Assembly (NCBI GenBank): GCA_002269645.1
Contig: NIVC01000186.1
Location: forward strand, 62,001-126,000
Origin: Macrostomum lignano
Taxonomy: Eukaryota
Direction: 5' to 3'
DNA length: 64,000 nt
This document shows positions 8,901 through 57,209 of the stretch, in pieces; the first letter of the stretch is position 1, and every line of letters starts with the position of its first letter. Made by a program: the position numbers and the translations under genes. The notes under the pieces were generated by a model. The model did no database searches. It was not told the DNA's origin and was given only the letters and a program-made list of their open reading frames with translations.

Positions 8901-9311
<411 letters not shown>

Positions 9312-9476: not shown

Positions 9477-12400
9477 ATGTTTCTGCGCGCACTTAAATTT
9501 CTGCTTCTGCTGTCACCGTTGCTGCTACCGGGAGTCGCTGGAAGCGAAGTGTCGGATGCCACCGGCAGAGTTGCATGGAGGCCGCACGCGTGTAAGCGCT
9601 CGGCTGCCAAAGTTTTTGCTCTGGTTTTTGTTTGTCGCAGAAAGTCAAAGCTGGAAAGGATGGAGAGCCGCTAGCAAGTGAAAGGCTAATCAGAAATGGA
9701 AGCAACAGGTTTAGCTGTCCATCGAAAATCTTTTCAAAGCATAAACAAGGCAATAAATTATTGAGATTCTCAATGCACCAGCCGGCTGCTGCACTGCAAT
9801 TAGAAATTCATAAATTCAAGCAGAAACTGCAGCCCCAGCGTCGCTTCTGCTTTTAGGGAAATTGAAGGGGGGGCAGATCTTTTTATTTCACCCATCCGCA
9901 TCCCACGCCAGAGCGTCGCTTCCGCCCCTTCCCGCAGGGGGTCCGGCGGGCCCGGTGGGCCCACCAGCCGACACTATGGAGACTCTGCCGGCTGATGAAG
10001 AGAAAGCCAGAGAGGCCAGTGAGTGATTCAGCTGACTCGGACACGCTGAATGTACTTTTCTGTGTTAGCAGCTACTCGTGCTGTCTCAATCTGCAGAGCT
10101 GTTTGATGCTGAGCAGTGTGCCTGACTCTCCCAGTCTGCAGAGCTGTTTGATGCTGAGCAGTGTGCCTGACTCTCCCAGTCTGCAGAGCTGTTTGATGCT
10201 GAGCAGTGTGCCTGACTCTCGCAGTCTTCAGAGCTGTTTGATGCTGAGCAGTGTGCCTGACTCTCCCAGTCTGCAGGGCTGTTTGATGCTGAGCAGTGTG
10301 CCTGACTCTCCCAGTCTGCAGGGCTGTTTGATGCTGAGCAGTGTGCCTGACTCTCCCAGTCTGCAGGGCTGTTTGATGCTGAGCAGTGTGCCTGACTCTC
10401 GCAGTCTTCAGAGCTGTTTGATGCTGAGCAGTGTGCCTGACTCTCCCAGTCTGCAGGGCTGTTTGATGCTGAGCAGTGTGCCTGACTCTCCCAGTCTGCA
10501 GAGCTGTTTGATGCTGAGCAGTGTACCTGACTCTCCCAGTCTGCAGAGCTGTGTCGTCGCTGCCACCCGACGCTCACCTGCTGGCTGCGTCGAGCTCCGG
10601 ATTTCACCCGGCCCTGAACAGCTTCTGCCTCGCCTTCAACGTCACCTGCGTCTTTCTGGACGCACTGGAGGGCGAACGAGTCCCCGACGACTGGCTGCAC
10701 AACGCCATCCGCTTCTTCCCAGCACCAGAGCTGCGCAGCCAATCGGTTTACGAGTACATCACCTGGGCCATGTGGACCAATTTTGTAGTTCTCTACTGCG
10801 ACTTTCACAGTGAGACATTGTGCACTTTCTGTGTCAGCAATGCAGAGTTTAAGTTTCTCTCTCGCCTTCCAACTCCAGACCTGGAAAGCATCCACAGCGT
10901 GTTCAACTATCCTATGGGCCCCGTACTGTTTCGGCACCTCGACCTGGACGATGCTCACGGCACACAGAGCGTGCTGCGTCAACTGAAACTGTCCACAATC
11001 AACAATTTCATTCTGGACATGCCGCACAGCCAGATTCTCAAGTTTCTAAAGCTGGTACTTTCTCCTATTAGATTAGTAGTGTTTTTAGTTTTATCCACTA
11101 TTGAGTTAAAGAACGCGATGCAATCTTGCGACAATTTCAGGCTAGCGAAGCAAATTTGAAGGGGCTGGCTAGAAGCTTCCTTCTGATCCGGGAGGTGAGG
11201 GTACAGTGATGATTGACGCCTCGAGCATCTCAATATCGAAAGCAACTTTCATAGTTTGCGCGAATTCTCGCTTACTGTCTGTCCGTCAAATCTGTTCTCA
11301 ACGAGCTTTAATGCTTTTCTGTAGCCCTTTTTCAACGCATTTCCTCCTGCAGATTAACAGCACCTTCTTCAAGGAGCAGATGGCTAGCAGAGTCTGGGCC
11401 GGCATGAACTTCACCTCGCACCTGTTTGATGGAGTCGAATTTGTTGGAGACGAGCCTCGTCAGGTGAGCTAATGAGACGGACACTGCCTCAATTCCATCT
11501 AATCTTAGTTAAGTTTACACTTTTGAGTTCACTGTCAAGGACCACCAGAAGCTACTCTCGTGAATATTGCAAAATTTTGTTACGTGTAACGTGGTATTTA
11601 TCGATGCTTGCCTTCAAAAAAAGCATTCTATTTGACTGTTTTTAAAGAAACCTGCACTGGCTTTGTGCAACAGAAGCTTCAACTTAGGTGTATTTATAAT
11701 TTGTGTGTACGAGTATAAAAAGTATTTTAAAAAGTACATGATATGAAAATGCATTCATGATTATTTAATCGACTGCTTTACCACCTGAGCGTCCGCACAA
11801 CGAATCATCAGGTTAATGCGGTAATACTTTGAGTCAATTGGAGCAAGCTAGCGTTTCGTTTTGAACGATTATTTCATATTTTTCATAATTAATTGCATTC
11901 GCATTCAAGTTATGCTACCTCTTTGTCAGTAGAGAGAAAGAGCATCGCGTCTTTTTATTTCGGCCTGGAACATTCCTACCGACAGAGGCGCAACAAGACT
12001 TCAGCGCTGGAGTTGCTGATGAATGCGGCGCACTCCTATTGGCTCAGCAGGTGGGCATCGGCGGGCGGAGCGCTTCGAGCTGGCTTCAAGAACCGGGCGG
12101 GCGCGTGGGAGCGGTGCGGCTCGCTAGGAGGCCGCGTTCACCCAGCCGCTGGGGAGTTTCGTCAACTGCTGGAGGCGAGTTGCAGCGCGTCTGTTTTGCA
12201 GTGTTGACCTTATAGAGGGTTGGCCTTACCCCCTATCAACGGTCATAGAGGGTTGACCTTACCCCATCAAGGGTCATAGAGGGTTGACCTTACCCCCTAT
12301 CAAGGGTCATAGAGGGTTGACCTTACCCCCTATCAAGGGTCATAGAGGGTTGACCTAATCGTTCGAGGGTAAAAAAAGGTTGCCTCTTCACGTCACCCGC

Positions 12401-15400
12401 AGAAGTTTGAACTCTTTTGAAGTAGAATTCTGATTAGAGATGCGAATAAACAGTGGATACAGCGAATGTCACAAAATCACCAATCCAAGATGCACACCAA
12501 ACGAACAGCTGCCTGTTCCAATCTGAAAACCTGCAGAAGCAAATCGAACAGCAAGTGGGCACGGTAATGATCGATGGAAAACGGTTGTACAACTTCTCAT
12601 TCAGCGTGTACCACATGTACACGGAGCGGGATCCCGAGGTAAGCTAGCAGTTCAGCAGGGCTCACCAATTTCACGACCCACGGTTAACTGCTATACTCGT
12701 CAATATTTTGTTGCAAAAACTTTCAGACCAAAGAGAACCTGAAGGAGATGAACGATGTAATCTTGCCTATCGCTAATCTGCTTTGGCGCAGCAGTCACTT
12801 TGATTTAGCTTAGATTGCATGACTTTATTTTTCAGCAACCGCTAAATAACATTTCAATTATCCACACAGTAAATTAATTTCGCATTTTTGCATGGTGAAT
12901 AAGCTGCTCAGTAGAGAAAGATAATATATTTACAGCTTGTTTGCTTGGATCGTCTGTTTTAAACTACTTAAAGTACGAGCCGTAGCTATTGAATGCTTTT
13001 TTACTTAGCGATGATAAATGCGCGCACAAGTCATTGGTTGGGGGACTAAAAGAACCAAGAATAACAGACAATTCTTGCTTCTGAACAAAGACATCTTGCA
13101 TCGTGTCGAAGGGGGAGGCCGTAGCCCAGTGGTCTGATGTGCCAGCGGCCCAGGCTCGATTCCCAGTGCAGTCACATTAATTTGGGACTAAATTGGAATC
13201 TCGGCTTGGCTCTGCTCGTGAAATTAACGGCCTTGAGAGCCACCCCCCCCCCCAAGGCGCAGTGAAGTGTACATGCCTAACTATAATATAAAGTTAGGGC
13301 CGCTGTACACTCCTGTGTGAGTGTGTGCCTGCGTACGTATCCGCGCGCTTGTGTGCCTGCTCAGGGGAGTCGGCGGAATGGGCAGTAATGCCTCTCGCTG
13401 GTTGTGTGCCAATGTCGCTTAAAATGCGCCAGGGTGCACACAACCCCCCTGCTTCTAATAAAAAAACCGCCCTAAATGCTGAACCTTGAATGCATTTTAA
13501 CTGAAAATCAATACCAACATTTTTATTTTTGTATGCCCGCACTGCTTGATTTAGTGGAACTTACCGCTAAGCTTAAATGTGCGAGAAGCATTAGCTTGAT
13601 AGTTCATCACTGTCACTGCCGATTAGACTCATTAAATAAGACTGAAGGCTGGAATGCATTCACCGCGCTTCAGTTTGCCACCTGGACGGCGCAAAAGGGA
13701 TTCGTCATGGCCCCAGGAGCCAGCAACCGGCATCAGCGGCACTTTCGCGAGTTCATGAACGAGCTGAACCTCACGGTGGTCACCGTCATCGATCCGCCGT
13801 TCAGCTTCGAGCGCGATTTCGACGACAACGGAAATCGATTGTATGGCAACGACAGGTGGACCGGCTTCTCTATCGAGCTGTTCAAGCGGGTGGCTTCTGT
13901 GCTCAATTTGACGTGAGTCTGGGCGCGTATTAGTGCCTTTAGTGTCTCAGTGTTTATGGTTTAGAGCGTCACCCCTTGAAGCAGCCACTATGAGGGAGTC
14001 ACCCCGCTGTGATGGAGTAGCAGATGTGAGCTGGGTCGGGTCTCAAAACTTCTGTGCCGGTTTCTGAACACCTGACCATCTTGCAGTGAGTCAGGCGTAT
14101 TCAAACCATCATCTGGTAACTGGACCATCGGTACAAATTCCGCTTCAGCTACACAATTCGAGTCAGCTCAGACGGGCAATTCGGCGGCCTGGTTGAGAAC
14201 GACTCAGATGAGCAGGTTTGGTCAGGAACAGTCGGCGAATTGATGGCCGGCACAGCCGATGTGGCCGTGGCCTCTCTAGTCATCACCTACGACAGGGAGC
14301 GCGTGAGAGCTGCACAGCATGCTACTTACACTCATTCTCAAAATTTGAGTCACGTTAAAGCAATGAGGCTCTAATCCATCAATAGGTCGTGGACTTCACC
14401 ACTCCGTACACAAGCCTGGGCCTGAGCGTGATCATGAAGAAGCCGGAGCAGCAGACCGACCCGCTCCAGTTCATGCTGCCCTTCAGCGGTCGCGTGTGGA
14501 CCTGCATGCTGCTGGCCTGGCTGCTCACCAGCCTGCTCATGCTAGTGTGCGCCAGGCTGAGTCCCTACGAGTGGTACTCGCACAATGACTGCGTGCCAGT
14601 TGTGGAAAACCAGTTTGGTGCACTGAACAGCATGTGGTTCACCATTGGCTCCCTGATGCAGCAGGGTGAGTGGCAGAATCCTATATGAGCCGCCCTTGGT
14701 CTGCCTGACACAGTGGTTGTTGGCTGTTGGGTATCCGGGGTCCACGTCGTGTTCTCTGGAGTGGGAGTCCGTGAATGTTAATAATAATCGATTACACCTG
14801 TCCCAATTGGACCAGATGTGCAACCGACAGCTCAGCCGCAGCTATTGAGCGGCGCATCTGAAAGCTGCGTACGGCTGTTCAGTCCAAGGACTGGGGGGGG
14901 GGGGGGTCGCCACACACACCCTCAATTACCCCAGCTAGTTCTGGCACCCATTTTACAGCTGGGTGAACTGAAGCAATGCTGAGGTATGTGTCTTGCTCAA
15001 GGACACTTATTGTTCTGAGTGGATCGAGAATCGAACCCACGACCTTCAATTCGGAGTCCGTGAAGCTCTCCAAAAAACCCGATTTCATTTGACTGTGGAG
15101 ACGCGGTATTCGGTGGGTCAGTTGCGGTTGTTGATTGGGGTCGATTTTTTATTTTATTCAAGCCAAGTTCTCATATTTCCTTTCAGTAAGGCAACGGCTT
15201 TCGATGTTGAGTATTTTTAACCAAATTTAGAATGTCGATGAGTCAATAGAAGAACAGGGGTGGTGAGACGTGTTAGGCAGTGTCGGGATGGACGCAGGAT
15301 GGACTGGGTGGGTTAGGTAGCCACGATAGCCTACGTACAATTAAGTAATTAAGTACTTAAGATTTAATATCCCGGTAACATCCCAAAACCTCAGGATCCG

Positions 15401-18229
15401 ATTTGGCCCCAAGAGCCTCATCGACGAGGATGGTTGCGACAACCTGGTGGTTCTTCACCCTGCTGCTCATCAGCTCCTACACGGCCAACCTGGCCGCTTT
15501 TCTCACCACCAGCCGGCTCGGCAACATCGACAGCGTGGAAGCGCTGGCCAGCCAGAGCAAAGTGAAGTTCGGCTGTCCCGTTGGCGGGGCCATGTACAAC
15601 TTCTTCAAGGTAAATTGGACTGACAGGTGTGAGCAGTGTATGATTTGTAAACAACGACGAATATTTCTACGTGTAAAATTCGTTTTGTTCCTACGAATTT
15701 CAGAACTCGAAGATTACCGTCTACCGGCGGATGTGGGACTCCATGGTTTCCTGGAGCGCTAAAAACGAGTCGTTTGTCGGGAAAACATCGGAAGGAATCG
15801 GCCGGGTTCGGGAGGGAGGCTACGCCTACATCCTTGAGTCCACGTTTAACCAGTACTATCGAGAGAGAGACTGCGAGCTCACGCAGATTGGAGGCATCTT
15901 CAATCCCAGCAGCTACGCGTTCGCAGTACCGCAGGGCAGTGAGTGATCTCGATCCCAGATCCCGATCCCAGATCCCGATCCCAGATCCCGATCCCAGATC
16001 CCGATCCCAGATCCCGATCCCAGATCCCGATCCCAGATCCCGATCCCAGATCCCGATCCCAGATCCCGATCCCAGATCCCGATCCCAGATCCCGATCCCA
16101 GATCCCGATCCCAGATCCCGATCCCAGATCCCGATCCCAGATCCCGATCCCAGATCCCGATCCCAGATCCCGATCCCAGATCCCGATCCCAGATCCCGAT
16201 CCCAGATCCCGATCCCAGATCCCGATCCCAGATCCCGATCCCAGATCCCGATCCCAGATCCCGATCCCAGATCCCGATCCCAGATCCCGATCCCAGATCC
16301 CGATCCCAGATCCCGATCCCAGATCCCGATCCCAGATCCCGATCCCAGATCCCGATCCCAGATCCCGATCCCAGATCCCGATCCCAGATCCCGATCCCAG
16401 ATCCCGATCCCAGATCCCGATCCCAGATCCCGATCCCAGATCCCGATCCCAGATCCCGATCCCAGATCCCGATCCCAGATCCCGATCCCAGATCCCGATC
16501 CCAGATCCCGATCCCAGATCCCGATCCCAGATCCCGATCCCAGATCCCGATCCCAGATCCCGATCCCAGATCCCGATCCCAGATCCCGATCCCAGATCCC
16601 GATCCCAGATCCCGATCCCAGATCCCGATCCCAGATCCCGATCCCAGATCCCGATCCCAGATCCCGATCCCAGATCCCGATCCCAGATCCCGATCCCAGA
16701 TCCCGATCCCAGATCCCGATCCCAGATCCCGATCCCAGATCCCGATCCCAGATCCCGATCCCAGATCCCGATCCCAGATCCCGATCCCAGATCCCGATCC
16801 CAGATCCCGATCCCAGATCCCGATCCCAGATCCCGATCCCAGATCCCGATCCCAGATCCCGATCCCAGATCCCGATCCCAGATCCCGATCCCAGATCCCG
16901 ATCCCAGATCCCGATCCCAGATCCCGATCCCAGATCCCGATCCCAGATCCCGATCCCAGATCCCGATCCCAGATCCCGATCCCAGATCCCGATCCCAGAT
17001 CCCGATCCCAGATCCCGATCCCAGATCCCGATCCCAGATCCCGATCCCAGATCCCGATCCCAGATCCCGATCCCAGATCCCGATCCCAGATCCCGATCCC
17101 AGATCCCGATCCCAGAGTAAGTGATTCAGAGTTGGGCTTCAGACATTCTTCACTCTATCAGGACTCACTTTTGTCGCACGTTGCACTTCCAAGACGTACT
17201 ACTTCGAGACGAGCTGAGCGAGGTGATTCTGAAGCTGCACAAGGAGCAGTTCATCGAGGACCTGTCTGATGCCTGGATCAAGCGGTTCAACCTGACCGGG
17301 CCGCCGTGCAGCGAGGTGCACACAGGATCCACCCCAGACGGCACCCTGGACGTCGCCTCATTCGGCGGAGTTTTTGTCTCAATGCTGGTCGGACTGGGAG
17401 TCGCGGTGCTGCTGTGCTTCATCGAGCTGATGTGGCGCAGCGCTACCTTGGCGATGAGAACTCAAGTGAGCTGATGACTTTATTACTCAATCGGCAGGTG
17501 TCATTCATTAGAAATAGATTCAGTTGTCATCCTCTGGATTCCATCATCACCTGGATTCCATCATCACCTGGATTCCATCATCACCTGGATTCCATCATCA
17601 CCTGGATTCCATCATCACCTGGATTCCATCATCACCTGGATTCCATCATCACCTGGATTCCATCATCACCTGGATTCCATCATCACCTGGATTCCATCAT
17701 CACCTGGATTCCATCATCACCTGGATTCCATCATCACCTGGATTCCATCATCACCTGGATTCCATCATCACCTGGATTCCATCATCACCTGGATTCCATC
17801 ATCACCTGGATTCCATCATCACCTGGATTCCATCATCACCTGGATTCCATCATCACCTGGATTGGTGTGATTAAGTGTAAAGTGAAGTCATAAGAAAATT
17901 CTGTTTGCTTGGAGTTTACGCGAAGAAACTTGGAGTTTGAAGGCTGAAGGTTGCGCCAACTCATCCCGAGACTTCCCGCCGCTCCGCAGCGAAGCTTCGC
18001 GGATTTGTGCATCGAACAGCTGCGGCTCGCCTTCCATCTGGCCGTCAACCGCAAGTCGCCGCCAGTGAAGAGCTCTCCGGCGCTGCCGCCGCCGCGACCG
18101 ATGGTATCGCTGCAACTGCCGCAGCCGTCGAAGTCGCCAAAGAGAGAGCCGTCGATTGGTGGCAGCGACGACAGCGGAAATGGGTACGGCGAGACTTCCA
18201 TGGCAGTGGCTGCGGACACCCGACTGTGA
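9477..18229 (+). CDS. ionotropic glutamate receptor, non-NMDA (AMPA/kainate-like) type, paralog A, about 893 aa
   Basis: 15 phase-compatible exons: 9477-9591, 10540-10809, 10879-11054, 11141-11194, 11353-11463, 11986-12174 (GC donor), 12537-12638, 12727-12756, 13674-13912, 14149-14302, 14386-14665, 15395-15609, 15704-15938, 17194-17465, 17990-18229 (2682 nt). Signal peptide, ATD, S1 ([23 protein letters not shown]), M2 [12 protein letters not shown]3 [10 protein letters not shown]2 YAYILEST, M4 FGGVF. Confidence 0.93.
10090..10552. repeat. 45-bp minisatellite x10 spanning the acceptor of iGluR-A exon 2
   Basis: Unit TCTGCAGAGCTGTTTGATGCTGAGCAGTGTGCCTGACTCTCCCAG. Period 45 from 10090 to the true exon start at 10540. 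Confidence 0.95.
13111..13466 (+). mobile_element. tRNA-derived SINE (family 1), near full length, in iGluR-A intron 8
   Basis: Head with A-box-like TAGCCCAGTGG and B-box-like GGCTCGATTCC; AATAAAAAAA tail; homologous copies at 54361-54706 and 46144-46374. Confidence 0.8.
14850..15075 (-). mobile_element. second tRNA-derived SINE-like element (V-domain-like)
   Basis: Minus strand reads GGGTTCGATTC (B-box), then GTGTCCTTGAGCAAGACAC..CAGTTCACCCAGCTGTAAAATGGGT, resembling the V-SINE central domain from recall. Lies in iGluR-A intron 11; absent from paralog B. Confidence 0.55.
15951..17117. repeat. 13-bp tandem repeat, about 90 copies, in iGluR-A intron 13
   Basis: (GATCCCAGATCCC)n starts 12 nt after the GTGAGT donor at 15939. 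Confidence 0.98.
17532..17871. repeat. 17-bp minisatellite x20 in iGluR-A intron 14
   Basis: (CTGGATTCCATCATCAC)n. Confidence 0.97.
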
Positions 18230-18231
18230 AC

Positions 18232-18561
<330 letters not shown>

Positions 18562-19029
18562 TGAGAGTTTGTCATTCTGCTAGAAAATCGCCATTATGAT
18601 CACTTGATACTATCTATGCCGTGGCCCGGACACTAGTTAGCCCACAAGATAGTTATCCCAAGCATCTGAAAGATCCCATGCTTTTCAAACGGCAATGATG
18701 ACCGCCACTATTACAGCATCGAAGGTATTCAAGCAATAAACAAACTCTTTGCAGAATTCTTTGGAGCTCATGAAACTTTTTTCTTAACGCTGCCGAGCTC
18801 ATGAGATCCGTCATTTATTTCCTTTTTGATTCGATAAGCTTAGCTCAAGGAGTTATCGGATAGCTGTCCTGTGCAGTGACAGGTAGGCAGATGCAGTGGG
18901 AAACTTGTGCGAACAAGCAGAGCAAATATTGTCTGTCACCTGCAGCTGCGTTTGAGAGGGAATGAAATAGAGAATGCTTGCACTTTTCTCTCGGATCTGA
19001 AGATTTTGACCAGATCGCTTTAAAGTACA

Positions 19030-20728
19030 AGGAATAGAATGGATTGCTAATCTAGCCAAAGCATGGATGCAGGAATAGAATGGATTGCTAATCTAGCCAA
19101 TGCATGGATGCAGGAATAGAATGGATTGCTAATCTAGCCAATACACGGATGCAGGAATAGAATGGATTGCTAATCTAGCCAATACACGGATGCAGGAATA
19201 GAATGGATTGCTAATCTAGCCAATGCATGGATGCAGGAATAGAATGGATTGCTAATCTAGCCAATACATGGATGCAGGAATAGAATGGATTGCTAATCTA
19301 GCCAATGCATGGATGCAGGAATAGAATGGATTGCTAATCTAGCCAATACATGGATGCAGGAATAGAATGGATTGCTAATCTAGCCAATACACGGATGCAG
19401 GAATAGAATGGATTGCTAATCTAGCCAATGCATGGGTGCAGGAATAGAATGGATTGCTAATCTAGCCAATACATGGATGCAGGAATAGAATGGATTGCTA
19501 ATCTAGCCAATACATGGGTGCAGGAATAGAATGGATTGCTAATCTAGCCAATTCATGGGTGCAGGAATAGAATGGATTGCTAATCTAGCCAATACATGGA
19601 TGCAGGAATAGAATGGATTGCTAATCTAGCCAATGCATGGATGCAGGAATAGAATGGATTGCTAGTCTAGCCAATACATGGATGCAGGAATAGAATGAAT
19701 TGCTAATCTAGCCAATACATGGATGCAGGAATAGAATGGATTGCTAGTCTAGCCAATACATGGATGCAGGAATAGAATGGATTGCTAGTCTAGCCAATAC
19801 ACGGATGCAGGAATAGAATGGATTGCTAATCTAGCCAATACACGGATGCAGGAATAGAATGGATTGCTAATCTAGCCAATTCATGGGTGCAGGAATAGAA
19901 TGGATTGCTAATCTAGCCAATGCATGGATGCAGGAATAGAATGGATTGCTAGTCTAGCCAATACATGGATGCAGGAATAGAATGAATTGCTAATCTAGCC
20001 AATGCATGGATGCAGGAATAGAATGGATTGCTAGTCTAGCCAATGCACGGATGCAGGAATAGAATGAATTGCTAATCTAGCCAATACATGGATGCAGGAA
20101 TAGAATGGATTGCTAATCTAGCCAATACATGGATGCAGGAATAGAATGGATTGCTAATCTAGCCAATACACGGATGCAGGAATAGAATGGATTGCTAATC
20201 TAGCCAATACATGGGTGCAGGAATAGAATGGATTGCTAATCTAGCCAATTCATGGGTGCAGGAATAGAATGGATTGCTAATCTAGCCAATACATGGATGC
20301 AGGAATAGAATGGATTGCTAGTCTAGCCAATACATGGATGCAGGAATAGAATGAATTGCTAATCTAGCCAATGTATGGATGCAGGAATAGAATGGATTGC
20401 TAATCTAGCCAATACATGGATGCAGGAATAGAATGGATTGCTAGTCTAGCCAATACATGGATGCAGGAATAGAATGGATTGCTAGTCTAGCCAATACACG
20501 GATGCAGGAATAGAATGGATTGCTAATCTAGCCAATACATGGATGCAGGAATAGAATGGATTGCTAATCTAGCCAATACATGGATGCAGGAATAGAATGG
20601 ATTGCTAGTCTAGCCAATACATGGATGCAGGAATAGAATGGATTGCTAGTCTAGCCAATACATGGATGCAGGAATAGAATGGATTGCTAGTCTAGCCAAT
20701 ACACGGATGCAGGAATAGAATGGATTGC
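19030..20728. repeat. 41-bp satellite, left arm, about 41 copies
   Basis: Unit GGATGCAGGAATAGAATGGATTGCTAATCTAGCCAATACAC, with variants. Confidence 0.97.
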
Positions 20729-20732
20729 ACTC

Positions 20733-20927
20733 TGTTGTACTCTGCCCCCCCCCTTTCTCGGCACGTTGATTTTAACTCCTGTGTACATTGCATCATAGAT
20801 GTACACTTACTCTAGAGCAATCGATTACAGAGCTTTGAGCTCAAATATATAATAGCACCCCACGCCCAAGTCGGGGCTGTAAGCTTTTGGTTCATCTAAA
20901 CTTCTGTCTCTCGCGTCAATCACTACA
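20733..20927 (+). repeat. 5' LTR (195 bp)
   Basis: TGTTGTACTC...CACTACA, with an internal TATATAA. Confidence 0.95.
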
Positions 20928-20947
20928 CTGGCGTCGCAAGCTAAGCT

Positions 20948-23900
20948 ATGTCTACTGAAAACAGTGGCCAGACACGCAACGTTGTTCAACTGCAACTGCC
21001 TCCACCTGAGCCATTCAACGTCAACCAAGAAGCACACGCACTGTCATCACGGTGGGAAGATTGGTCGTCGCGCTTTCTGTGCTTCATCCACGCCTCCGGA
21101 GTCAAGGATCCGGCCCAGCAGAGACAAGTCCTGCTCTACACAGGCGGGAGGGAGCTGGCCGAGCTATACAAACAGCTGACCAACAGCGGAAACACAGTCG
21201 AAGAACTCATCAAGGCTTTCAAGGACCACTTCACAGGCCGCAGGTGCGTGGTGTTCTCAAGATACGAGTTCCGAAACTGCACGCAGCAACCAGGCCAGAG
21301 CATCGACGCATGGGTCAGTCAGCTATACAAGGCCGCAGAAAGCTGCGACTTCGACAATTTGCGCGACTCCCTCATCCGCGACCAGATTGTCGCCGGATGC
21401 AACACCGAGCAACTCAGAAGACGGCTACTGCAGACCGCCAACATCAACTTGCAGGATGCACTGCAGCTGTGCCGAGCCTTCGAAGCCGCTAGCTACCAGT
21501 CAGCGGCCATGGAGTCACGCCGCGACGAGACAGTCAACTCAATGAGGCGCACCAGAGGTGAGCAACAAGACGGACCATCGTACAAGCCTGGCAGCAAGTC
21601 CAAGTGCTACCGATGCGGAGAAACCGGGCACCGTAGCTGCGACGCGGCCAAAGGCAAAACATGCAACATCTGTAAAAAGGTGGGCCACCTGGCGAAGGCC
21701 TGTATGTCTAAGGGCAACTCCAGAGACCGCGTGCACACCATTGGCGGTCAGCATCAACACCCGGAAGAATCCAGCAAGTCACCAAGCGACGAAGGGGAGG
21801 TCTTCTGCCTGACTGCGAACAAGCTGCCGCTGATGAGCATCTCTATCAACGGTAAGCGGGTCGAGGCGCTCATCGATAGTGGCGCCAGCTGCAATGTCAT
21901 CGACCAGGCGACTTTTCAAGATCTCAAAACAGCCAAAACGCCACTGCTTCGATCAGCACGGCAGCTGTACCCGTTCGGCTCGAAGACACCACTGGCGACC
22001 GCCGGCAGAGCTGAGCTCCTTGTCAAAATCAGCGGTCTCGAGGAAGTAGTGGACTTCACAGTAGTGCAAGACCCGGGCGTCACCATTCTCGGAAGGGCAA
22101 CGAGCGAGAAGTTCAGAGTACTACGAGTGGGTCCGGCGCCGGAAACTCGCATCAACAGCATCGGGAGTGCCGACAAGGCAAAGGCAATGGAGTCCTCGAG
22201 TCCGGAGGCCAACTCAGCTAACCTTCCAGCAAACCTCCAGCTTGATAACATCCTCAAAAAGCACCGGGCGCTCTTCCAAGGAGTTGGCTGCGTCAAGGAC
22301 GTCGAAGTGAGCATCCGACTCAAGGACAACGCTATCCCAGTGTGCCACCCGCCTAGCCGAGTGCCAATCCACCTACGAGACGCAGCCATCAAAGAGCTCG
22401 ACGCCCAGCTCAGCGAAGGCATCATCGAGCGAGTATCTGAGCCTTCCGAATGGGTCGCTAGAATGGTAGTGGTACCAAAAAGCAATCCGAACCAGGTGCG
22501 AATCACCCAAGACCTTCGAGACCTCAATCAATACGTAGTGCCGGAGAAGCAGCCGATTCCGACCTTTGAAGAGGTCACAGACGAAATGGCCGGTTCACAC
22601 TTCTTCTCGGAGCTAGACATCAATAAAGCCTTTCACCAAATCAAGGTCGATCAGGAGTCACGCAAGTTTCTGACCTTCTCGACACCACTGGGCTTAATGA
22701 GGCTCACGCGCCTCTGTATGGGTTTCACGTCGGCTTCAGAAATTCTACAGCGTGTGATGTCTACAGTACTCAGCGGCCTGCCAGGAGTGAGATGGGTGCA
22801 CGACGACATCATTGTGTATGCCCGGGACATCCAGGAGCACAACAGTCGCCTAGTCAGCTGCCTTCAGCGTCTTCAGGGACACGGCCTGACTCTCAACCCG
22901 TCCAAGTGCAAATTTGCGGTGCCGGAGGTCAACTTCCTGGCCATGCGACTGTCGGCAAAAGGGATCCAGCCAGCTGAAGCCAAGGTGTCGGCGATCAAAA
23001 GCTTCAAAGAGCCAACGAACGCCTCGGAAGTCCGCTCCTTCCTCGGTCTGGTTACGTTTGTCAGTCGCTTCATGCCAGGCCTGGCGGACATGACGAAGCC
23101 GTTGCGGGACCTGACCAAGAAGAGTGCAAGCTGGCAGTGGGGCGAGCAGCAGGCCAAGGCTTTTCAAGAAGTCCGAGATCGCATCGCAGTCGACAGCACA
23201 CTGGTCTTCTTCGACAAGCACCGGCATACCGAACTCGTTGTCGACGCCAGCCCCATCGGACTCGGCGCCATTCTTTGCCAGATTCAGTCCGACGGCTCAT
23301 CCAAGCCGGTTGCATTCGCAAGCAGAGCCCTATCGGCAGTCGAGTCGAGGTACTCACAGACGGAACGGGAGGCTCTCGCAATCAAGTTCGGCTGCCTGAA
23401 ATTTCGACACTATCTCAGCGGCGCCGCCAACTTTACTGTCGTCACCGACCACAAGCCGCTGACCTTCATGCTCAAGCCCGGCTCGCGCCCACCTCCACGC
23501 ATCGAGCGCATGGCGCTCAGCATCCAGGACATGCAGTTCAGCGTCATCTATCGGCCAGGCCCGTTCAACCCGAGCGACATCCTCAGCCGGCAGCCAGAGC
23601 CCGCTCCGACATCGATCAACATCGGCGAGATCCTGGACACAAACTTCATCGGCAGCATCGCGCAAGCGGCGACGCCGAGAGGCCTGTCCCTGCAGCAAGT
23701 CCGGGAAGCCACGGCCCGTGATGCCATTCTATCGACTGTGCTGTCATCGTTGAGAACAGGCAATTGGGATCTGCGGGACGACAGCATCCGACGACTGCAC
23801 GCCGCCAGGCACGAGTTGACCGAGGCTTCTGGCGTTCTGCTGCGAGACCAAAGATTGGTAATCCCAAAAGCCCAGCGGCCCGTTGTCCTGCAGCTGGCTC

Positions 23901-24992
23901 ATCAAGGACATCAAGGCGAGACCAAAACACTGCGCCGACTCAACTCCAAGGTCTGGTGGCCCGGAATGTCAGCTGAGGCCAAGCAACTGGTGGCACAGTG
24001 CCTGGAATGTGCGGCCACTAACCATCAAGCGGAAGTTTCGGCAGCCCCACTGCAACCGACTGAGCTGCCAGAGTCTGCCTGGTCCACTATCGGCATCGAC
24101 TTTCTTGGACCTGCCAACGGTCGACATTTCCTGGTGATCATAGACCACTACTCGCGCTACCCCATCGTCGTGGCGATGAAGTCGATCACAGCTGACCGCA
24201 CCACCAGACAGTTACAGCAGGTCTTCGCGACCTTCGGGATTCCCCAGCAAATCGTGACGGACAACGGTCCGACATTCACATCAGAAGCCTTCAGGAGTTT
24301 CGTCACAAGCCACGGAATCAGCCACCGGCGCATCACACCGTACCATCCCGAGGCCAATGGCATTACCGAGCGAATCAACAGGTCCCTGAACAAGCTGCTC
24401 CGCATCTCCAACGCCCAAGGAACCGACTGGAGGACGGCATTGCAGGAGTGGCTCGCCGCGTACCGCAGCACTCCGCACACGGCCACAAGGAGTCGCCCCA
24501 GCCGACCTGATGTTCGGGAGACCAGTCCAAGACTGCATTCCAGGAGTCAAGCCGCAGGCTGCAGCAAAGACGGTCAGGAACAGAGACCGTCAGTACAAAG
24601 CCGCCATGAAGCACTACGCCGACGCGACAAGATCAGCCACAGAGCATCGCATCCAAGCTGGCGATAAAGTCCTCCGCAGAAAAACCCAGCCATCGAAAAC
24701 GGATACGCCATTTGAAATTCAGCCTTGGACAGTCACGGAGGTCAAAGGCGATTCTGTCATCCTGGAGAGCATGGGCGGCAGCAACTGCATGCGCCACGCC
24801 AGCGACGTTAAGCGACTGCCAGAGCGGCCAACAGGAGACGGACCAGACGAGACCGGCAGTCCAGAAGGCGACCCGACGGCCGCTTCGGCCCCCGCGGAGC
24901 CGCCGGCCGCCGCCGGTGCGGGGGAGCTGCCAATCGCGAACCGTCCGCATCCAAGAAGCTGCAAACTACCGCATCCCAATTATAGGACCTGA
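20948..24992 (+). CDS. gag-pol: gag-pol polyprotein with an apparent +1 frameshift near 24487 in the integrase C-terminal region
   Basis: Zinc knuckles CYRCGETGHRSC and CNICKKVGHLAKAC; protease LIDSGAS; RT WVHDDII; RNase H VDASPIGLG..YSQTEREAL; integrase HQGHQG..WWPGM..CLEC, GIDFLGP, TDNGPTF, PYHPEANG. Removing one A at 24487-24488 restores TATGVAPADLMFGRP and joins ORF 24510-24992. Confidence 0.95.
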
Positions 24993-25094
24993 TTTTTTTC
25001 GTGCAAAACTGACGAACCTATAAACCTCTTTTTGCTTTTTTTGCGCATGACATTCATTTTTTTTTAATCCGTTAATCTCCGCGAAGGGGAAAGA

Positions 25095-28183: not shown

Positions 28184-28440
<257 letters not shown>

Positions 28441-43209: not shown

Positions 43210-47552
<4,343 letters not shown>

Positions 47553-47869
47553 CTTGGTTTCTGATGTACCTCAGTAAATAACTTTCCCAAGCATCCAGTT
47601 CATATCTGCCATGACAGCAGTGAGTAGCAGCAGTCCCGGTCTCAATAGCAACGGTATCAACTCAAGCTTGCAGTCTTGATGCTCAAGTGCCCTGAATTTG
47701 TCATCATAAATTATTATTTTATATTTATGATCTTAGCTGCATTGATGCTAATCCTCTACAATTAATATCTATCATTTTGCTCTATTTTTTCAATTTTCAT
47801 AAATTTCAGCTACACCGCATCTCGCTGACCCCAACCTTTAGATAGCTGTGATTTTCAATTGATCTTTAT

Positions 47870-49682: not shown

Positions 49683-52600
49683 TCAATAGCCTGGGGACTC
49701 GGTTGCTATGACTGAAGACTTGGTTGCTATGGCTGAAGACTCGGTTGCTATGGCTGGAGACACGGTTGGTATGGCTGGAGACACGGTTGCTATGGCTGGA
49801 GGCTCAGTTGCTATGGCTGAAGAATCGGTTGCTATGGCTGGAGACACGGTTGCTATGGCTGGAGACTCGGTTGCTATGGCTGGAGACTCGGTTGCTATGG
49901 CTGGATGCTCCATTACTAGTGCGCCTACTGTGGTTGCTAAGGCCTGGTCTGCGTCCATATTATCATTGTGGTCGGTTTCTAGGGGCAATGCGTCCCAGTT
50001 GGCATTGGAGACGCAGGCGCAGGGAGGCGGCGCAGGCGACATCTCCTTCTGGTTAATGTTCAGCTTCGTTGCCAAACGAAGGTGCTCAATTAGCAAGTCC
50101 AGGAATGGTCGCTGAAATTCGAGTGAAAGTTTGCATGCTCGATACATTGACACTCGGTGCACTTAAAACACCTGATATCCTTGATCAATGGGTACAACAT
50201 CCGAAGGCTCACCCGGGTTCTCAGGGCCAGGGTGCGACAGCGCCATAGCAGTTCGACAAAACAAAGTAGGACAGCCACGCCAAGTCCGATCATCAGGGCG
50301 ATGAAGACGCCCCCGAAGGATGCCACTTCCATGGTGCCGGTCGGAGATGCATCGTCCACTGCTTCGCTGCACGGCGGCCCGGTCAGGTTGAACCGCTTGA
50401 TCCAGGCATTCGACAGATCCTCGATGAACTGCTCCTTGTGCAGCTGAAGAATGACCTCACCAAGCTCCTCCTTGAGAAACGCGTCTGAAAAAGAAAGAAA
50501 AAGAAAGAATGGAATATCGATCACAGATCACAGATCATCTGGGATCGGGATCTGGGATCGGGATCTGGGATCGGGATCTGGGATCGGGATCACTCACTGC
50601 CCTGCGGTACTGCGAACGCGTAGCTGCTGGGATTGAAGATGCCTCCAATCTGCGTGAGCTCGCAGTCTCTCTCTCGATAGTACTGGTTAAACGTGGACTC
50701 AAGGATGTAGGCGTAGCCTCCCTCCCGAACCCGGCCGATTCCTTCCGATGTTTTCCGGACAAACGACTCGTTTTTAGCGCTCCAAGAAACCATGGAATCC
50801 CACATTCTTCGGTAAAGTGGGATTCGGGAATTCTGAAAGCGAACAAAAGCATTACGCACCAGACTTGAATGCTTCGCAGTGTTAAAATCTGGATTTTACA
50901 ATTTTTGAACCAGTAATTTCCTTCACAAACGTATTTCTAATCTACCCGGAAGAGATTTTGATTGCTCGATGTGCCAACCAGCAATCTGATTAACCTTGAA
51001 GAGTGTGCATACCGCACCTACATGTATCATACGGCTGCTGAGAGCAGTACTTCAGCAAATAAAGGATGAAGGTGCACACTGCTCACACCTGTCAGTCCAA
51101 TTTACCTTGAAGAAGTTGTACATGGCCCCGCCAACAGGACAACCAAACTTCACTTTGCTCTGGCTGGCCAGCGCTTCCACGCTGTCGATGTTGCCGAGCC
51201 GGCTGGTGGTGAGAAAAGCGGCCAGGTTGGCCGTGTAGGAGCTGATGAGCAGCAGGGTGAAGAACCACCAGGTTGTCGCAACCATCCTCGTCGATGAGGC
51301 CCTGGGCGCCAGTTCGGATCCTGAGGTTTCGAAGTAGGAAGAACTGATGAGGGCCAATACGATTGTGCATCAGGTCGCTGCACTGTGCCGCTCTGTCTGG
51401 GAAGGCAGCAAAACTGGCTGAACTGCTTAGCTGTGGGCCCGCCTCTCACCTTCATTTTTACCCAAGCCAGCGCCCCAGCTTCCCTGCACTTCCCCTCTCC
51501 CCCTCTCCCTCTCACTCTCTCCCTGTCCCCCTGTCTCTCCCTCTCTTTCTCTCCCTCTCCCTCTCTTCCTGTCCCTCTCTCTCCCCCTCTAACTCTCCCT
51601 CCCCCTCTTTCGAGTTTCGAAGTGTTCAATATATTCTTAATATCGGCTTTTCGCTTTGCATCAGGGAGGCAGTCCAAGTATAAACATAGTCAATAGTCAA
51701 TAAAATTTGTTAGAATTCCGTAAAACTGCAAGGCTTCCTTGTTTAGAAAATAGGCATTTACTGGTTTCTGCATACAGTGCTAAGGCTTTTTGTCCAAGTA
51801 GTCTGTCTCGCATGGAGAGCTTCACGGACTCCCGCTCCAGAGAACACGACGTGGAACCTGGATACCCAACAGCCAACAACCACTGTGTCAGGCAGACCAA
51901 GGGCGGCTCATATTGGATTCTGGCACTCACCCTGCTGCATCAGGGAGCCAATGGTGAACCACATGCTGTTCAGTGCACCAAACTGGTTTTCCACAACTGG
52001 CACGCAGTCATTGTGCGAATACCACTCGTAGGGACTCAGCCTGGCGCACACTAGCATGAGCAGGCTGGTGAGCAGCCAGGCCAGCAGCATGCAGGTCCAC
52101 ACGCGACCGCTGAAGGGCAGCATGAACTGGAGCGGGTCAGTCTGCTGCTCCGGCTTCTTCATGATCACGCTCAGGCCGAGACCCATGAAAGGTGTCGTGA
52201 AGTCCACGACCTTCGTAGATGAGTAATTTATTCAGATAGGTTTTGATACTTGTAGCACTACTTATTCGAGTAGTGTGTTCTTGGAGTAGGCACCCACCCG
52301 CTCTCTATCGTAAGTGATAACTAGAGTGCCAATGGCCACATCGGCTGTGCCGGACATCAAATCGCCGATCGCTCCGGACCAAACCTGCTCGCCGGCTTCG
52401 TTTAGCTTCGGACTGCCAAACTGACCGTCCGAGCTGACTTGGATCGTGTAGCTGAAAACAAGAAGACGTAGAGATTAATTTAAGTGTGCCTTTGACATTT
52501 GACGCGTTCGACAGAGTCAAATAGCTGACTTGTGTTGAAGAGAGAGCGTGCACTGGAAGTCAAGTAGCTTACTTGTGTTGATGAGAGAGCGTGCACTGGA

Positions 52601-55600
52601 AGTCAAGTAGCTGACTTGTGTTGAAGAGAGAGCGTGCACTGGAAGTCAAGTAGCTGACTTGTGTTGATGAGAGAGCGTGCACTGGAAGTCAAGTAGCTGA
52701 CTTGTGTTGAAGAGAGAGCGTGCACTGGAAGTCAAGTAGCTGACTTGTGTTGAAGAGAGAGCGTGCACTGGAAGTCAAGTAGCTGACTTGTGTTGAAGAG
52801 AGAGCGTGCACTGGAAGTCAAGTAGCTGACTTGTGTTGAAGAGAGAGCGTGCACTGGAAGTCAAGTAGCTGACTTGTGTTGAAGAGAGAGCGTGCACTGG
52901 AAGTCAAGTAGCTGACTTGTGTTGAAGAGAGAGCGTGCACTGGAAGTCAAGTAGCTGACTTGTGTTGAATAGTCCAGCTTGAAGTTCAAGAGCGGTCGCG
53001 AACTGAATAAATTCGTGGATTTAAGACTGGTGTCAAGTACCGTATTGCATATGATTAATGAGTGGGGAGTACATGTAAAGGTGTTCAGAGGTTTCCTAAA
53101 TATTAGTTAGAGTTTAGTACTTAAAAAGGAAGTTCAACTCAAGGAAGAGTTCAAACTCACGAAATTTTCAGTCGTTGAGCGGCCTCCTTAAACAATTCGA
53201 TAGCCATGCCAGTCCATCGTTGGTTTCCTATCAGGCGATTGCCACCTGCGTCAAAGTCCCTCTCCAGACTAAACGGCGGGTCGATGACAGTGGCAACAGT
53301 GAGGTTCAAGCCGCTCATGGACCGTTCGTAATGTTGCTCCTCCATGTTGGAGCCGACACGTGTGACACGGTAGCCTCTGTCCAGATTCCATTCGGCAAAC
53401 TGCAATCGGGTGCGCGAATGTGATTCGAGACTTTGATGCCTGTCAAGACTACCAGACCGAGTATTTTACTTGCCTTCATGTTCTGAATCAGGCGCGAACC
53501 GTTGGCGAGCTGAAATTTGAAGCGTTAATTAAAAAGAAACGAGTTAGAGTCATGATAGTCGACAAGACTGAGTGACTTCATCAACATCCCAACAGACTAG
53601 TCTATTGATATATCATGAGAACCTGCTCACTTGTAAGAGCTGTTGCTAATAAAGAGTAGCCACCGAATTTTTCGAGTACGAGTCACCACGGGAGATCCTG
53701 TGGATTCTAGCGGTTAAGATTGAACTGTCTGCATAACTATGTACTACGGGATTTTGGAGCGCAGTCCAATCAAATAAGAGCAGAAATGATTACCACTACC
53801 TGACTTTGAATCCCACTCATACGTTGCCCTACCCCGTGTGGGAATGTGCCACATGATAATCGATAATGTGCTCAAACCTCGTGCCGCGACATGTGCCTGA
53901 CGACGAAGGAGAAGTTGTAGTACTTCGCGCCGTCGAGTAGAACAACGCCAAGGCGATTGCGGATCTTGCTCTGAAAATAGCAAAGTACAGATTTATAGTT
54001 CGTTTGGTGTAACTCAACCTATTGAATCGAAAAATCGAAGCAGAGGTATAAATGACGAAATCAGTCAACCTCCAAAACGTGTCGAAATTCTCCAACTCTT
54101 GTCGTTAAAGGAGGCTGGCACCGCATCGAACTTTCTAATCCGATTTTCTCAGCAGTAAAAGCGATGGGAGCTGCGACTGTCCGCCAGGCTTCATAAGCAG
54201 CGTCAAGTAAAAGTTCCAAGGCTTCAGCGCGAGATCGGGTTGGCTGCAAGAAATGGGAGGGCTTGGAGTTAATGGCTTCGTGTCTATGGCTTTACATCTA
54301 TGGCCTTGCATCTATGGCCTTGAATCTATGGTTTTGTGTCTATGGCCTTGCGACATGGCTTTTTTTATTAGAGGCAGGGGGGTTGTGTGCACCCTGGCGC
54401 ACTTTAACAACCGGCGAGAGGCATTGCTGCCCATTCCGCCGACTCCCCTGAGCAGGCATACAAGCGCGCGGATACGTACGCAGGCACACACTCACACAGG
54501 AATGTACAGCGGCCCTAACTTTATTTTATCGTTAGGCATGTACACTTAACTGCGCCTTGGGGGGTTGGCTCACAAGGCCGTTAATTGCACGAGCAGAGCC
54601 AAGCGGAGATTCCAATTCAGCCCCAAATTAATGTGACTGCACTTGGAATCGAGCCTGGGTCGCTGGCACACCAGAGCCTGCGCTAGACCACTGGGCTACG
54701 GCCCCCTGCAACATGGCTTTGAATCTATGGTTTTGTGTCTATGGCCTTGCATCTATGGCATTGAATCTATGGTTTTGTGTCTATGGCCTTGCAACATGGC
54801 TTTAAATCTATGGTTTTGTGTCTATGGCCTTGCATCTATGGCCTTGAATCTATGGTTTTGTGTCTATGGCCTTGCATCTATGGCCTTGAATCTATGGTTT
54901 TGTGTCTATGGCCTTGCAACATGGCTTTGTTTGAATCTATGGTTTTGTGTCTATGGCCTGGCAACATGGCTTTGAATCTATGGTTTTGTGTCTATGGCCT
55001 TGCATCTATGGCCTTGAATCTATGGTTTTGTGTCTATGGCCTTGCATCTATGGCCTTGAATCTATGGTTTTGTGTCTATGGCTTTGCATCTATGGCCTTG
55101 AATCTATGGTTTTGTGTCTATGGCTTTGCATCTATGGCCTTGAATCTATGGTTTTGTGTCTATGACTTTGCATCTATGGCCTTGAATCTATGGTTTTGTG
55201 TCTATGGCTTTGCATCTATGGCCTTGAATCTATGGTTTTGTGTCTATGACTTTGCATCTATGGCCTTGAATCTATGGTTTTGTGTCTATGACTTTGCATC
55301 TATGGCCTTGAATCTATGGTTTTGTGTCTATGGCCTTGCAACATGGCTTTGAAAGGTTCGAAAAAAGTCACGAACGCTATCGATGCTCTCGCCGATGAAC
55401 CGGACGCCGCCTAGTTGGTGCGTTGTGAAATTCACTCCGTTGTTCAGCCTTGGCGCCACGTGGCGACCAAAGAATGCTTCGCTCAACTAAAAGCAGAAAT
55501 CAGGCGGCTATATGTCAGTTGCAATCTTGCAAAGCGAGCACTCTGTTTTGCTAGAATTACCACGTCAGAAATCAGAAGGAAGCTGTGCGCCATTCCGTTG

Positions 55601-57209
55601 AGGCCCGCCGCTTTGGCCTGGAAATAAGTATCGAGGAACGCTGCATTGCATAGCTATGTGTTCTCTTCCGAGATATCAAACTCCTCACTATGCATATTAT
55701 ATAAGTAGGCACTGCGGCCATTGTGGAAAATAATAAAATGCATCTCTTGCTAACCAATTTAAAGAAGTTTGGCAGGCTACGAATCGGCATGTCCACGACA
55801 AACCGGTGCAGAGTGCTCCGTTTGAGTCGGTGCAGCTGGTGCAGCGCCTTACTAGGCCTGCTCATGTCCAGCGGTCGAAACAGCACCGGCCCCAGCGGGT
55901 AGTTGAGCAGCGTCTGCACCTTTTCAAGGTCTTTATTCGGGCGTTGGGTGAAATGTGCTTTTTTATTTGTGATGAGGGTGATTGAGAACTTGTTTTAAAG
56001 TGGGCAACACAAACATGCATAGAAAAATGGGACACCCCCAGCCTTGAGACCGACTCACTGTCAAAGTTACTGTAGAAAACGATAAACTCTCTCCACATCG
56101 ACCAAATGACGTAATCAGAAATCGATCGGCTGCGCAGCTCTGGCGCCGGAAAGAAGCGGATGGCGTTGTGCAGCCAGTCGTCGGGGACTCGTTCGCCCTC
56201 CAGTGCGTCCAAGAAGATGCAGGTGACGTTGAAGGCGAGGCAGAAGCTGTTCAGGGCCGGATGGAATCCCGAGCCCGATACAGCCAGCAGGTGAGCGTCC
56301 GGTGGCAGCGACGACACAGCTCTGCAGACTGGGAGAGTCAGGCACACTGCTCAGCATCAAACAGCTCTGCAGACTGGGAGAGTCAGGCACACTGCTCAGC
56401 ATCAAACAGCTCTGCAGACTGGGAGAGTCAGGCACACTGCTCAGCATCAAACAGCTCTGCAGACTGGGAGAGTCAGGCACACTGCTCAGCATCAAACAGC
56501 TCTGCAGACTGGGAGAGTCAAGGCACACTGCTCAGCATCAAACAGCTCTGCAGACTGGGAGAGTCAGGCACACTGCTCAGCATCAAACAGCTCTGCAGAC
56601 TGGGAGAGTCAAGGCACACTGCTCAGCATCAAACAGCTCTGCAGACTGGGAGAGTCAAGGCACACTGCTCAGCATCAAACAGCTCTGCAGACTGGGAGAG
56701 TCAAGGCACACTGCTCAGCATCAAACAGCTCTGCAGACTGGGAGAGTCAAGTCACATTGCTTAGCAACCAATGAGTGACAGCTCTTTAAGGCAGCTCAGC
56801 AGGTACATGCAGCAGTAATTTTATCCCAATATCGATCAACTCACTCTCCGCCAATGCAAGTTCCTCAGAGTCCGGCAGCACAGCTGTGCGGTTGTGCAAA
56901 TCAATTTTGGCTGCACTCTCAGGATTCCCTGAAGCGATTAATTGACATGATCAGATGCATGCAGAACAGCATTCGCTGCAGTTTAGTCTCAATTTTAAAA
57001 ATCGAACAAACAGTTTCCGGAGTTGTAAAAAATTCTGCTGCAATTATCTACCGCAAAAAATGATAGAAATTTTCTATCTCACATGCGTGAAATCTCCATT
57101 CGACTCTTCCAGCGGTTGCTGCCGCCGTTGCCAAAGCGATTCCAGAGGTCAGAATGATGGCTCCCAGAGCCAGTAGTGACCGCAGATCAGCGTTGCACTT
57201 GGCGAGCAT
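49683..57209 (-). CDS. ionotropic glutamate receptor, non-NMDA type, paralog B, about 955 aa
   Basis: 15 exons with the same phases as paralog A: 57209-57083, 56328-56059, 55930-55755, 55617-55561, 55486-55376, 54243-54070, 53970-53878, 53509-53474 (GC donor), 53399-53161, 52451-52298, 52210-51931, 51320-51106, 50832-50598, 50484-50213, 50111-49683 (2868 nt). Same M2, M3 (SYTANLAAF), S2 and M4 motifs. Confidence 0.92.
49697..49905 (-). repeat. 21-bp coding minisatellite (AIATESP-type heptads) in the iGluR-B C-terminal tail
   Basis: About 10 in-frame units within the last exon. Confidence 0.88.
50538..50591. repeat. 13-bp repeat x4 in iGluR-B intron 13, homologous to the about 90-copy array in paralog A
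   Basis: Reverse complement of GATCCCAGATCCC, at the same distance from the donor. Confidence 0.92.
52516..52968. repeat. 43-bp intronic minisatellite, about 10 copies
   Basis: Unit AGTAGCTGACTTGTGTTGAAGAGAGAGCGTGCACTGGAAGTCA, in iGluR-B intron 9. Confidence 0.95.
54290..55350. repeat. 42-bp minisatellite interrupted by a SINE
   Basis: Unit CTATGGCCTTGCATCTATGGCCTTGAATCTATGGTTTTGTGT on both sides of 54361-54706. Confidence 0.93.
54361..54706 (-). mobile_element. tRNA-derived SINE family 1, full length
   Basis: Minus-strand head GGGGCCGTAGCCCAGTGGTCTAGCGC...GGCTCGATTCC and an A-rich tail. Flanked by TGC(G/A)ACATGGCTTT, a possible TSD. Confidence 0.85.
56316..56750. repeat. 45/46-bp minisatellite, about 9 copies, spanning the iGluR-B exon 2 acceptor
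   Basis: Reverse complement of the 10090-10552 unit; some distal copies carry one extra base. Confidence 0.95.

Follow-up and report, generated by a model that had tools for sequence, protein, structure and literature searches.

How can two related genes be almost identical in some exons, down to silent and intronic bases, and saturated with silent changes in others? The question is raised by a 64,000-nt stretch of contig NIVC01000186.1 of the flatworm Macrostomum lignano (hereafter the window, whose first letter is position 1 in all coordinates given here), which carries two convergent genes for ionotropic glutamate receptors (iGluRs), A and B. We find a mosaic of divergence between the two genes, with silent and intronic identity confined to discrete tracts, sharp tract edges, and open reading frames (ORFs) that are intact in both copies. 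These features point to repeated interlocus (non-allelic) gene conversion between A and B as old inverted paralogs, which we consider a very probable explanation of the locus.

Mosaic divergence along two convergent receptor genes

Gene models for A and B were built jointly, from stretches in which the two loci encode similar peptides, by requiring that acceptor and donor sites agree in aligned position and phase between A and B and then chaining these sites with both reading frames kept open. Gene A, a kainate-like iGluR gene, occupies 9477-18229 on the forward strand and encodes 889 aa in an open frame across 14 exons and 13 GT-AG introns, with exons 1-7 at 9477-9591, 10540-10809, 10879-11054, 11141-11194, 11353-11463, 11986-12192 and 12537-12638, and exons 8-14 at 13674-13912, 14149-14302, 14386-14665, 15395-15609, 15704-15938, 17194-17465 and 17990-18229. 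Its paralog, gene B, occupies 57209-49683 on the reverse strand and encodes 942 aa, likewise across 14 exons and 13 GT-AG introns, with exons 1-7 at 57209-57083, 56328-56059, 55930-55755, 55617-55564, 55486-55376, 54243-54070 and 53970-53878, and exons 8-14 at 53399-53161, 52451-52298, 52210-51931, 51320-51106, 50832-50598, 50484-50213 and 50111-49683. The genes lie tail to tail, their homologous parts 34-47 kb apart on one DNA molecule. In the joint model intron positions and phases are common to both at all 13 introns, and exon lengths are equal in 10 of the 14 exons (exons 1, 6, 7 and the last being unequal). In the diverged exons, nonsynonymous divergence (dN) is well below synonymous divergence (dS).

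A preliminary description of the locus had counted 14 introns with common positions and phases; the common positions and phases stand, while the count comes to 13, in genes of 14 rather than 15 exons, and what were there called exons 11, 12 and 13 are exons 10, 11 and 12 of the joint model. As candidates for a 14th intron, a split of exon 6 (11986-12192 in A) and extra exons within introns 5-7 were tried by the same joint chaining, and neither an equal-phase donor/acceptor pair common to A and B nor a conserved extra exon was found there. The C-terminal tail of B contains a 21-bp coding minisatellite (10 copies, 49691-49905) translated as (S/P)PAIAT(E/V/D) repeats, which is missing from A and accounts for most of the 53-aa difference in length.

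Divergence between the two genes is far from uniform along their length. By the Nei-Gojobori method, dS is 0.13-0.30 in exons 2, 10, 11 and 12 and 0.76 in exon 9, against values from 1.2 to saturation in exons 1, 3-8, 13 and 14, in keeping with the strong divergence earlier ascribed to exons 3-8 of the presumed amino-terminal domain (ATD). With the count of four-fold degenerate sites restricted to codons whose amino acid is shared by A and B, differences stand at 10 of 142 sites within the high-identity tracts described below versus 89 of 143 outside them (Fisher p = 2.3e-24), and the longest run of identical four-fold sites, 35 in length, was reached in none of 20000 permutations. A two-state hidden Markov model (HMM), with mismatch rates of 1.9% and 44%, gains 262 in log-likelihood over a uniform model and, not having been given the tract limits, recovered the same limits. 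Introns outside the tracts are mostly unalignable, intron 9 and the 3' end of intron 11 aligning weakly, whereas divergence within the tracts is 1.3-6.5% and is alike at third codon positions and in adjoining intron DNA. The M4 part of exon 13 is instructive in this respect, as its protein is well conserved but its bases mismatch at nearly every third position, so that protein constraint does not protect silent sites here. The GC content at third codon positions (GC3) is 0.79-0.80 in the tracts versus 0.73 (A) and 0.63 (B) outside them, a pattern that could reflect GC-biased conversion or a donor role of A, and is decisive for neither.

Five collinear tracts and their edges

The low-divergence sequence falls into five tracts (T1-T5), which are collinear between the genes in inverted orientation and 93-98.5% identical, with edges inside both exons and introns. 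Mid-exon edges lie at 10740, 14419, 15731, 17234 and 17314 (exons 2, 10, 12 and 13), and the tracts extend by 30-118 nt into otherwise unalignable introns, T1 taking in the whole of an array in intron 1. Four of the tracts had been claimed beforehand, and a blastn comparison of the loci, which gave no more than a handful of inverted collinear matches, together with base-by-base maps found all of them essentially where they had been placed. The accompanying claim of near-identity is borne out for T2-T4, with 4-8 mismatches each, and is too generous for the exon part of T1.

T1 extends over 10090-10740 on the forward strand in A and over 56766-56128 on the reverse strand in B, and joins the intron-1 array to the first 200 nt of exon 2. 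The array has a 45-bp unit in A (10.3 copies, 10090-10552) and a 45/46-bp unit in B (9.9 copies, 56316-56766), and the array-to-array blastn match of 10090-10507 with 56737-56316 is 97% identical. The exon part holds 13 mismatches in 200 nt (93.5% identity), and immediately beyond the APELRS codons (10740) mismatches rise to a density of about 30%, precisely the abrupt mid-exon end that the preliminary description had noticed. Each 45-bp unit joins the final 31 nt of intron 1, with the polypyrimidine tract and AG acceptor, to the 14 nt with which exon 2 opens; a tandem duplication across the intron-exon junction gave rise to the array. Both genes hold about 10 copies, with the same consensus except for a one-base length variant in B, and as this shared array of about 10 copies stands beside saturated ATD exons, an independent origin is implausible and one gene must have received it from the other. 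Units private to one array have appeared since (with AGGGC and with CTCGCAG/TCTTCAG in A, and 46 bp long with CCTTGAC in B), which mark the two arrays as real, separately evolving loci.

T2 (14419-14775, forward, in A; 52177-51821, reverse, in B, or to 51813 with resumed homology) has 7 mismatches in 357 nt and comprises the last 247 nt of exon 10, encoding pre-M1, M1, the M2 pore loop and, in MQQG, the Q/R site, together with 110 nt of intron 10. Exon 10 opens with 33 nt that lie outside the tract and hold 10 mismatches. At its distal end gene A reads GGAGTCCGTGAA, 277 nt of unrelated sequence and then GGAGTCCGTGAAGCTCTCCA, whereas gene B reads GGAGTCCGTGAAGCTCTCCA uninterrupted. Intron 10 of A accordingly contains a 289-bp insertion (14776-15064), flanked by a 12-bp direct repeat (GGAGTCCGTGAA) that resembles a target-site duplication and absent from B, beyond which T2 homology resumes for 8 nt (15065-15072), so that the true reach of the tract is 118 nt into the intron. 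One end of the insertion carries a GGTCGTGGGTTCGAT motif resembling a tRNA B box, and ARAGORN found no tRNA within it. The insertion is probably an element like a short interspersed element (SINE) that entered A after the conversion.

These details bear directly on whether the tracts might have been created by the assembly itself, with reads of one paralog correcting the other during polishing or the assembler switching between copies. The locus is a difficult one: the region is full of tandem repeats, and several near-identical copies of it appear to exist. The database proteins closest to A and B are M. lignano UniProt models, untidy ones, of which P0001, P0121 and P0122 are B-like, and at least three distinct B-like sequences besides B of the window can be told apart by the alternatives DLMSG/DLISG, VAIGTL/VAVGTL, LGNIDS/LGTIDS and CPVGG/CPIGG. 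The genome therefore appears to carry several slightly different copies of this iGluR locus, consistent with the hidden polyploidy that has been reported for M. lignano. Consensus collapse, however, would not be expected to leave 1.3-6.5% of scattered mismatches within the tracts, nor private variants in the intron-1 arrays. The tracts moreover enter intron DNA whose surroundings are unalignable, where reads could cross-map only if the identity were real, and the insertion with its 12-bp duplication, sitting within T2 homology in A only, is a mark of loci that have evolved separately. We accordingly give an artefact of assembly or polishing very little credence.

T3 (15386-15639, forward, in A; 51329-51076, reverse, in B) has 8 mismatches in 254 nt and comprises 9 nt of intron 10, the whole of exon 11, in which M3, carrying SYTANLAAF, is encoded and S2 begins, and a further 30 nt of intron 11 that are identical in the two genes. 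Six nucleotides upstream of T3, intron 10 of B contains a dispersed repeat (51336-51608) that is 94.5% identical to 34981-35254; the two copies are 273 bp long, lie on the same strand and have a CT-rich tail. The copy in B appears to be another recent insertion, one that would shape the apparent edge of T3.

T4 (15731-15999, forward, in A; 50805-50537, reverse, in B) has 4 mismatches in 269 nt and runs from the 28th base of exon 12, within S2, to 61 nt inside intron 12. It ends within a 13-bp array (GATCCCGATCCCA) that has 90 copies in A (15945-17116) and 4.2 copies in B (50537-50591). T5 (17234-17314, forward, in A; 50444-50364, reverse, in B), which the preliminary description did not include, was picked out by the HMM; it covers 81 nt within exon 13, 3 of them mismatched, and the encoded peptides differ at one D/N position.

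A single 1.6-kb conversion over 14419-15999, later split by insertions, was considered in place of separate tracts, and is partly true at the end of T2 only. It was rejected because the leftover intron DNA has no similarity between the genes and because exon 12 shows true divergence over its first 27 nt; T2, T3 and T4 are separate patches in a patchwork. Also set aside as a conversion tract was a 345-bp match, 89% identical, between 13122-13466 and 54685-54360, which looks like a conversion tract in a dot plot but pairs intron 7 of A with intron 5 of B and is not collinear. This is a dispersed repeat with a third copy at 46134-46374, downstream of B, the copies being 81-89% identical. The chimeric C-terminal ends of the P0001 and P0122 models read into 45887-46570.

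The preliminary description had proposed that the pore and S2 stay uniform while the ATD, S1 and tail diverge. This holds in outline, with pre-M1 to M2, M3 and most of S2 uniform and S1, M4, the tail and most of the ATD diverged. The ATD, however, is not diverged as a whole, as its first 67 residues have also been homogenised.

Probable gene conversion and competing histories

Purifying selection acting at the nucleotide level, through duplexes for adenosine-to-inosine (A-to-I) editing, splicing enhancers or extreme codon bias, might in principle preserve silent and intronic bases without any exchange between the genes. Editing of vertebrate GRIA2 at its Q/R and R/G sites requires exon-intron duplexes. 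T2 stops just past the exon bearing the MQQG Q/R site, the exon end within T4 matches roughly the position of the vertebrate R/G site, and GC3 is somewhat higher in the tracts. Against these points, folding of the three exon-intron junctions gave structures no better than those of dinucleotide shuffles (z = +0.62, -1.28 and +0.59), and ADAR-type editing hairpins were rejected as the cause of the intronic identity on that ground. Selection of this kind also leaves unexplained both the 10-copy intronic minisatellite shared within T1 and the sharp mid-exon onsets at 14419 and 15731, on either side of which the protein is equally conserved. The like divergence of exon and intron parts (1.3-3.7%) fits a single date of copying rather than graded constraint. 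Nucleotide-level selection is thus a highly improbable cause of the tracts.

The history might also be read in reverse, with A and B as recent duplicates (about 2% diverged) whose diverged exons were imported from distant members of the family. Direction cannot be polarised with two sequences, and other iGluR paralogs do exist in M. lignano, among them P0009 at 43% identity. Such a history would nevertheless demand many more events, replacing 9 of the 14 exons and nearly all intron DNA while keeping every intron position. No close third paralog of A and B was found in protein searches, a search of the window gave no third iGluR copy, and the flanks of A and B share no homology beyond the gene bodies. 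We hold this reversed order of events to be scarcely credible.

Gene conversion between old paralogs remains the reading that we prefer, and the two elements of it put forward in the preliminary description, an old duplication and recent conversion tracts, are upheld by saturated silent sites outside the tracts, divergence of 1.3-6.5% inside them, and abrupt edges that ignore exon boundaries. A and B would be tail-to-tail duplicates of one kainate/AMPA-like iGluR gene that have since exchanged sequence several times. In the mechanism that we envisage, a break in one copy would be mended with the other as template, the copying covering a few hundred bases at a time regardless of exon boundaries. 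The most conserved exons may have been hit repeatedly because only these retain enough identity for strand pairing, and the intronic minisatellites beside T1 and T4 may have served as break-prone initiation sites. Inverted orientation, finally, could make exchange tolerable, in that a crossover would lead to an inversion and not to a deletion.

At least two ages of exchange can be told apart. T2-T5 are 1.3-3.7% diverged and the exon part of T1 6.5%, while exon 9, at 76.5% nucleotide identity and dS of 0.76, and intron 9 are still alignable and look like an older conversion event that has since decayed. The spread of values suggests that the conversions date from two or three different times at the least. 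A further hint comes from the protein encoded by exon 11, in which N and V (LGNIDS, CPVGG) are common to P0001 and to A and B of the window, while P0121 and P0122 have T and I. This distribution would be expected if conversion status differed among the copies of the locus, and equally if two substitutions had occurred in one lineage.

Several considerations weigh against gene conversion as proposed here. The roles given to the minisatellites and to inverted orientation are conjecture. The evidence consists of two DNA sequences, and mis-assembly and mis-polishing have been judged from the assembled sequence. The limits entered into the Fisher test were picked after viewing the maps, with the mitigation that the HMM limits agree without them, and the GC3 excess is modest, so that any signal of GC-biased conversion is weak.

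A more elaborate scheme can be built on the same observations. The placing of the patches would then not be random: break-prone minisatellites in the introns, namely the 45-bp array with its repeated exon-2 acceptor site and the 13-bp array past exon 12, would seed exchanges, and selection would retain only conversions by which pore, gate and S2 lobe remain identical between the two subunits, leaving the ATD, S1, M4 and tail to specialise. Such module-wise concerted evolution would preserve co-assembly into a heteromeric channel, and may still be segregating among homeologs in this polyploid genome, at which the N/V against T/I difference between B-like copies hints. We mention it as an unlikely elaboration, to which we attach a good deal less belief than to conversion itself.

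The encoded subunits, their surroundings and known systems

Both predicted proteins match Pfam Lig_chan (E = 3e-39 for A, 1.5e-39 for B) and Lig_chan-Glu_bd (E = 9e-30 for A, 9e-28 for B), with SBP_bac_3 also matched in both. The best match among solved structures is GluK2 (E = 3e-104), with AMPA subunits close behind. By their channel and ligand-binding domain, A and B belong to the AMPA/kainate-like group of iGluRs, the near-equal AMPA scores favouring neither subfamily. Against GluK2 (PDB 9c5y and others), the S1-M1-M2-M3-S2-M4 portion of A and B aligns end to end; both keep the equivalents of Arg523, which contacts the alpha-carboxyl group, and Glu738, which contacts the alpha-amino group, and both align at the genomically encoded Q of the Q/R site (MQQG) and at SYTANLAAF in M3. 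They differ from GluK2 in the pocket, where in both proteins the equivalent of Thr690 is Met, that of Ala518 is Val and that of Pro516 is Ser. These pocket changes sit in exon 11 (15395-15609 in A, 51320-51106 in B) and exon 9 (14149-14302 in A, 52451-52298 in B), and given these changes the agonist of A and B may be other than glutamate.

The N-terminal stretch of about 340 residues (exons 2-7, 10540-13673 in A and 56328-53400 in B) fits an ATD in position and length, the two features on which we presume it to be one. It has no match to any Pfam family, PF01094 (ANF_receptor) at E <= 0.01 included, and no PDB sequence match at E <= 10. In a database of 5.8 billion proteins its close relatives are four M. 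lignano proteins only, three of them from a profile search with the ATD/S1 region and the fourth being P0001.

As a net result of the exchanges, pore, gate and S2 lobe are almost identical between the two subunits, which differ in their ATD, S1, M4 and C-terminal tail. For annotation and phylogeny of flatworm iGluRs this carries a caveat, in that trees of the channel core would date the duplication as recent and trees of the ATD as ancient. The pair would also lend itself to a natural series of chimeras with which to trace assembly and ligand specificity to particular iGluR modules. As a base-resolved set of short repeated tracts between inverted paralogs in a lophotrochozoan, it could further serve to calibrate tract length and age from the tract edges and the post-conversion insertion.

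Repeats are abundant in and around the two genes. Between A and B lies a Ty3/gypsy-type long terminal repeat (LTR) retrotransposon (19030-27104) with one uninterrupted gag-pol ORF of 1240 aa on the forward strand (20945-24664), comprising a zinc knuckle, aspartyl protease, reverse transcriptase, RNase H and integrase. Its direct repeats of about 1.9-2.0 kb (19030-20928 and 25095-27104) are 95% alike and internally tandem, with a self-match ladder of about 123-164 bp. A (CTGT)n / 12-bp TGTCTGTCTCTG microsatellite is present just upstream of the start of A (8883-9335) and 2 nt past its stop (18231-18562), and the same (CTGT)n / TGTCTGTCTCTG microsatellite recurs about 2.1 kb downstream of the stop of B (46985-47554). 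Introns of the two genes hold further minisatellites with units of 17 bp (19 copies, 17534-17863), 43 bp (10.6 copies, 52515-52969), 42 bp (15 copies, 54713-55353) and 33 bp (4.5 copies, 12212-12356). A GC-rich satellite block (57385-60823 and 63326-64000), whose self-matches fall in steps of about 105-160 bp at 92-95% identity, starts 176 bp upstream of the start codon of B.

Upstream of A, an ORF on the forward strand (5876-6463) encodes almost the same sequence as the N-terminal part of the M. lignano UniProt model P0123 ('AGC-kinase C-terminal domain-containing protein'). P0123 runs from this upstream gene into A-like intron-1 and exon-2 sequence, and is accordingly a fused gene model. Beside this ORF lies a repetitive one (6892-8151) with a weak RhoGAP match.

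Interlocus gene conversion between linked paralogs is well known from human gamma-globin genes HBG1/HBG2, from the exons of the red and green opsins, and from the arms of Y-chromosome palindromes. A and B resemble these systems as old duplicates on one chromosome with short tracts, hundreds of bases long, that are nearly identical at silent and intronic sites, have abrupt limits and stand in a background of high divergence, and with the Y palindromes they share an inverted orientation. They differ in that the exchanged sequence forms five patches of 81-650 bp amid unalignable introns, in a pair that is otherwise saturated and has no long homogenised arm. Two of the patches, moreover, abut shared minisatellites, and the A/B case comprises two sequences only.

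Our literature search returned nothing on the A/B pair or on conversion in Macrostomum iGluRs. PMC4122928 discusses gene conversion for linked members of insect chemoreceptor families, including the iGluR-related ionotropic receptors (IR); the systems treated there are the IR chemoreceptors of Drosophila, analysed family-wide, whereas A and B are a single pair of synaptic-type iGluRs in a flatworm, with tracts mapped base by base. Set beside all of these systems, the process at work in A and B is well supported as ordinary, known interlocus gene conversion, one that calls for no new mechanism and would not surprise a specialist.

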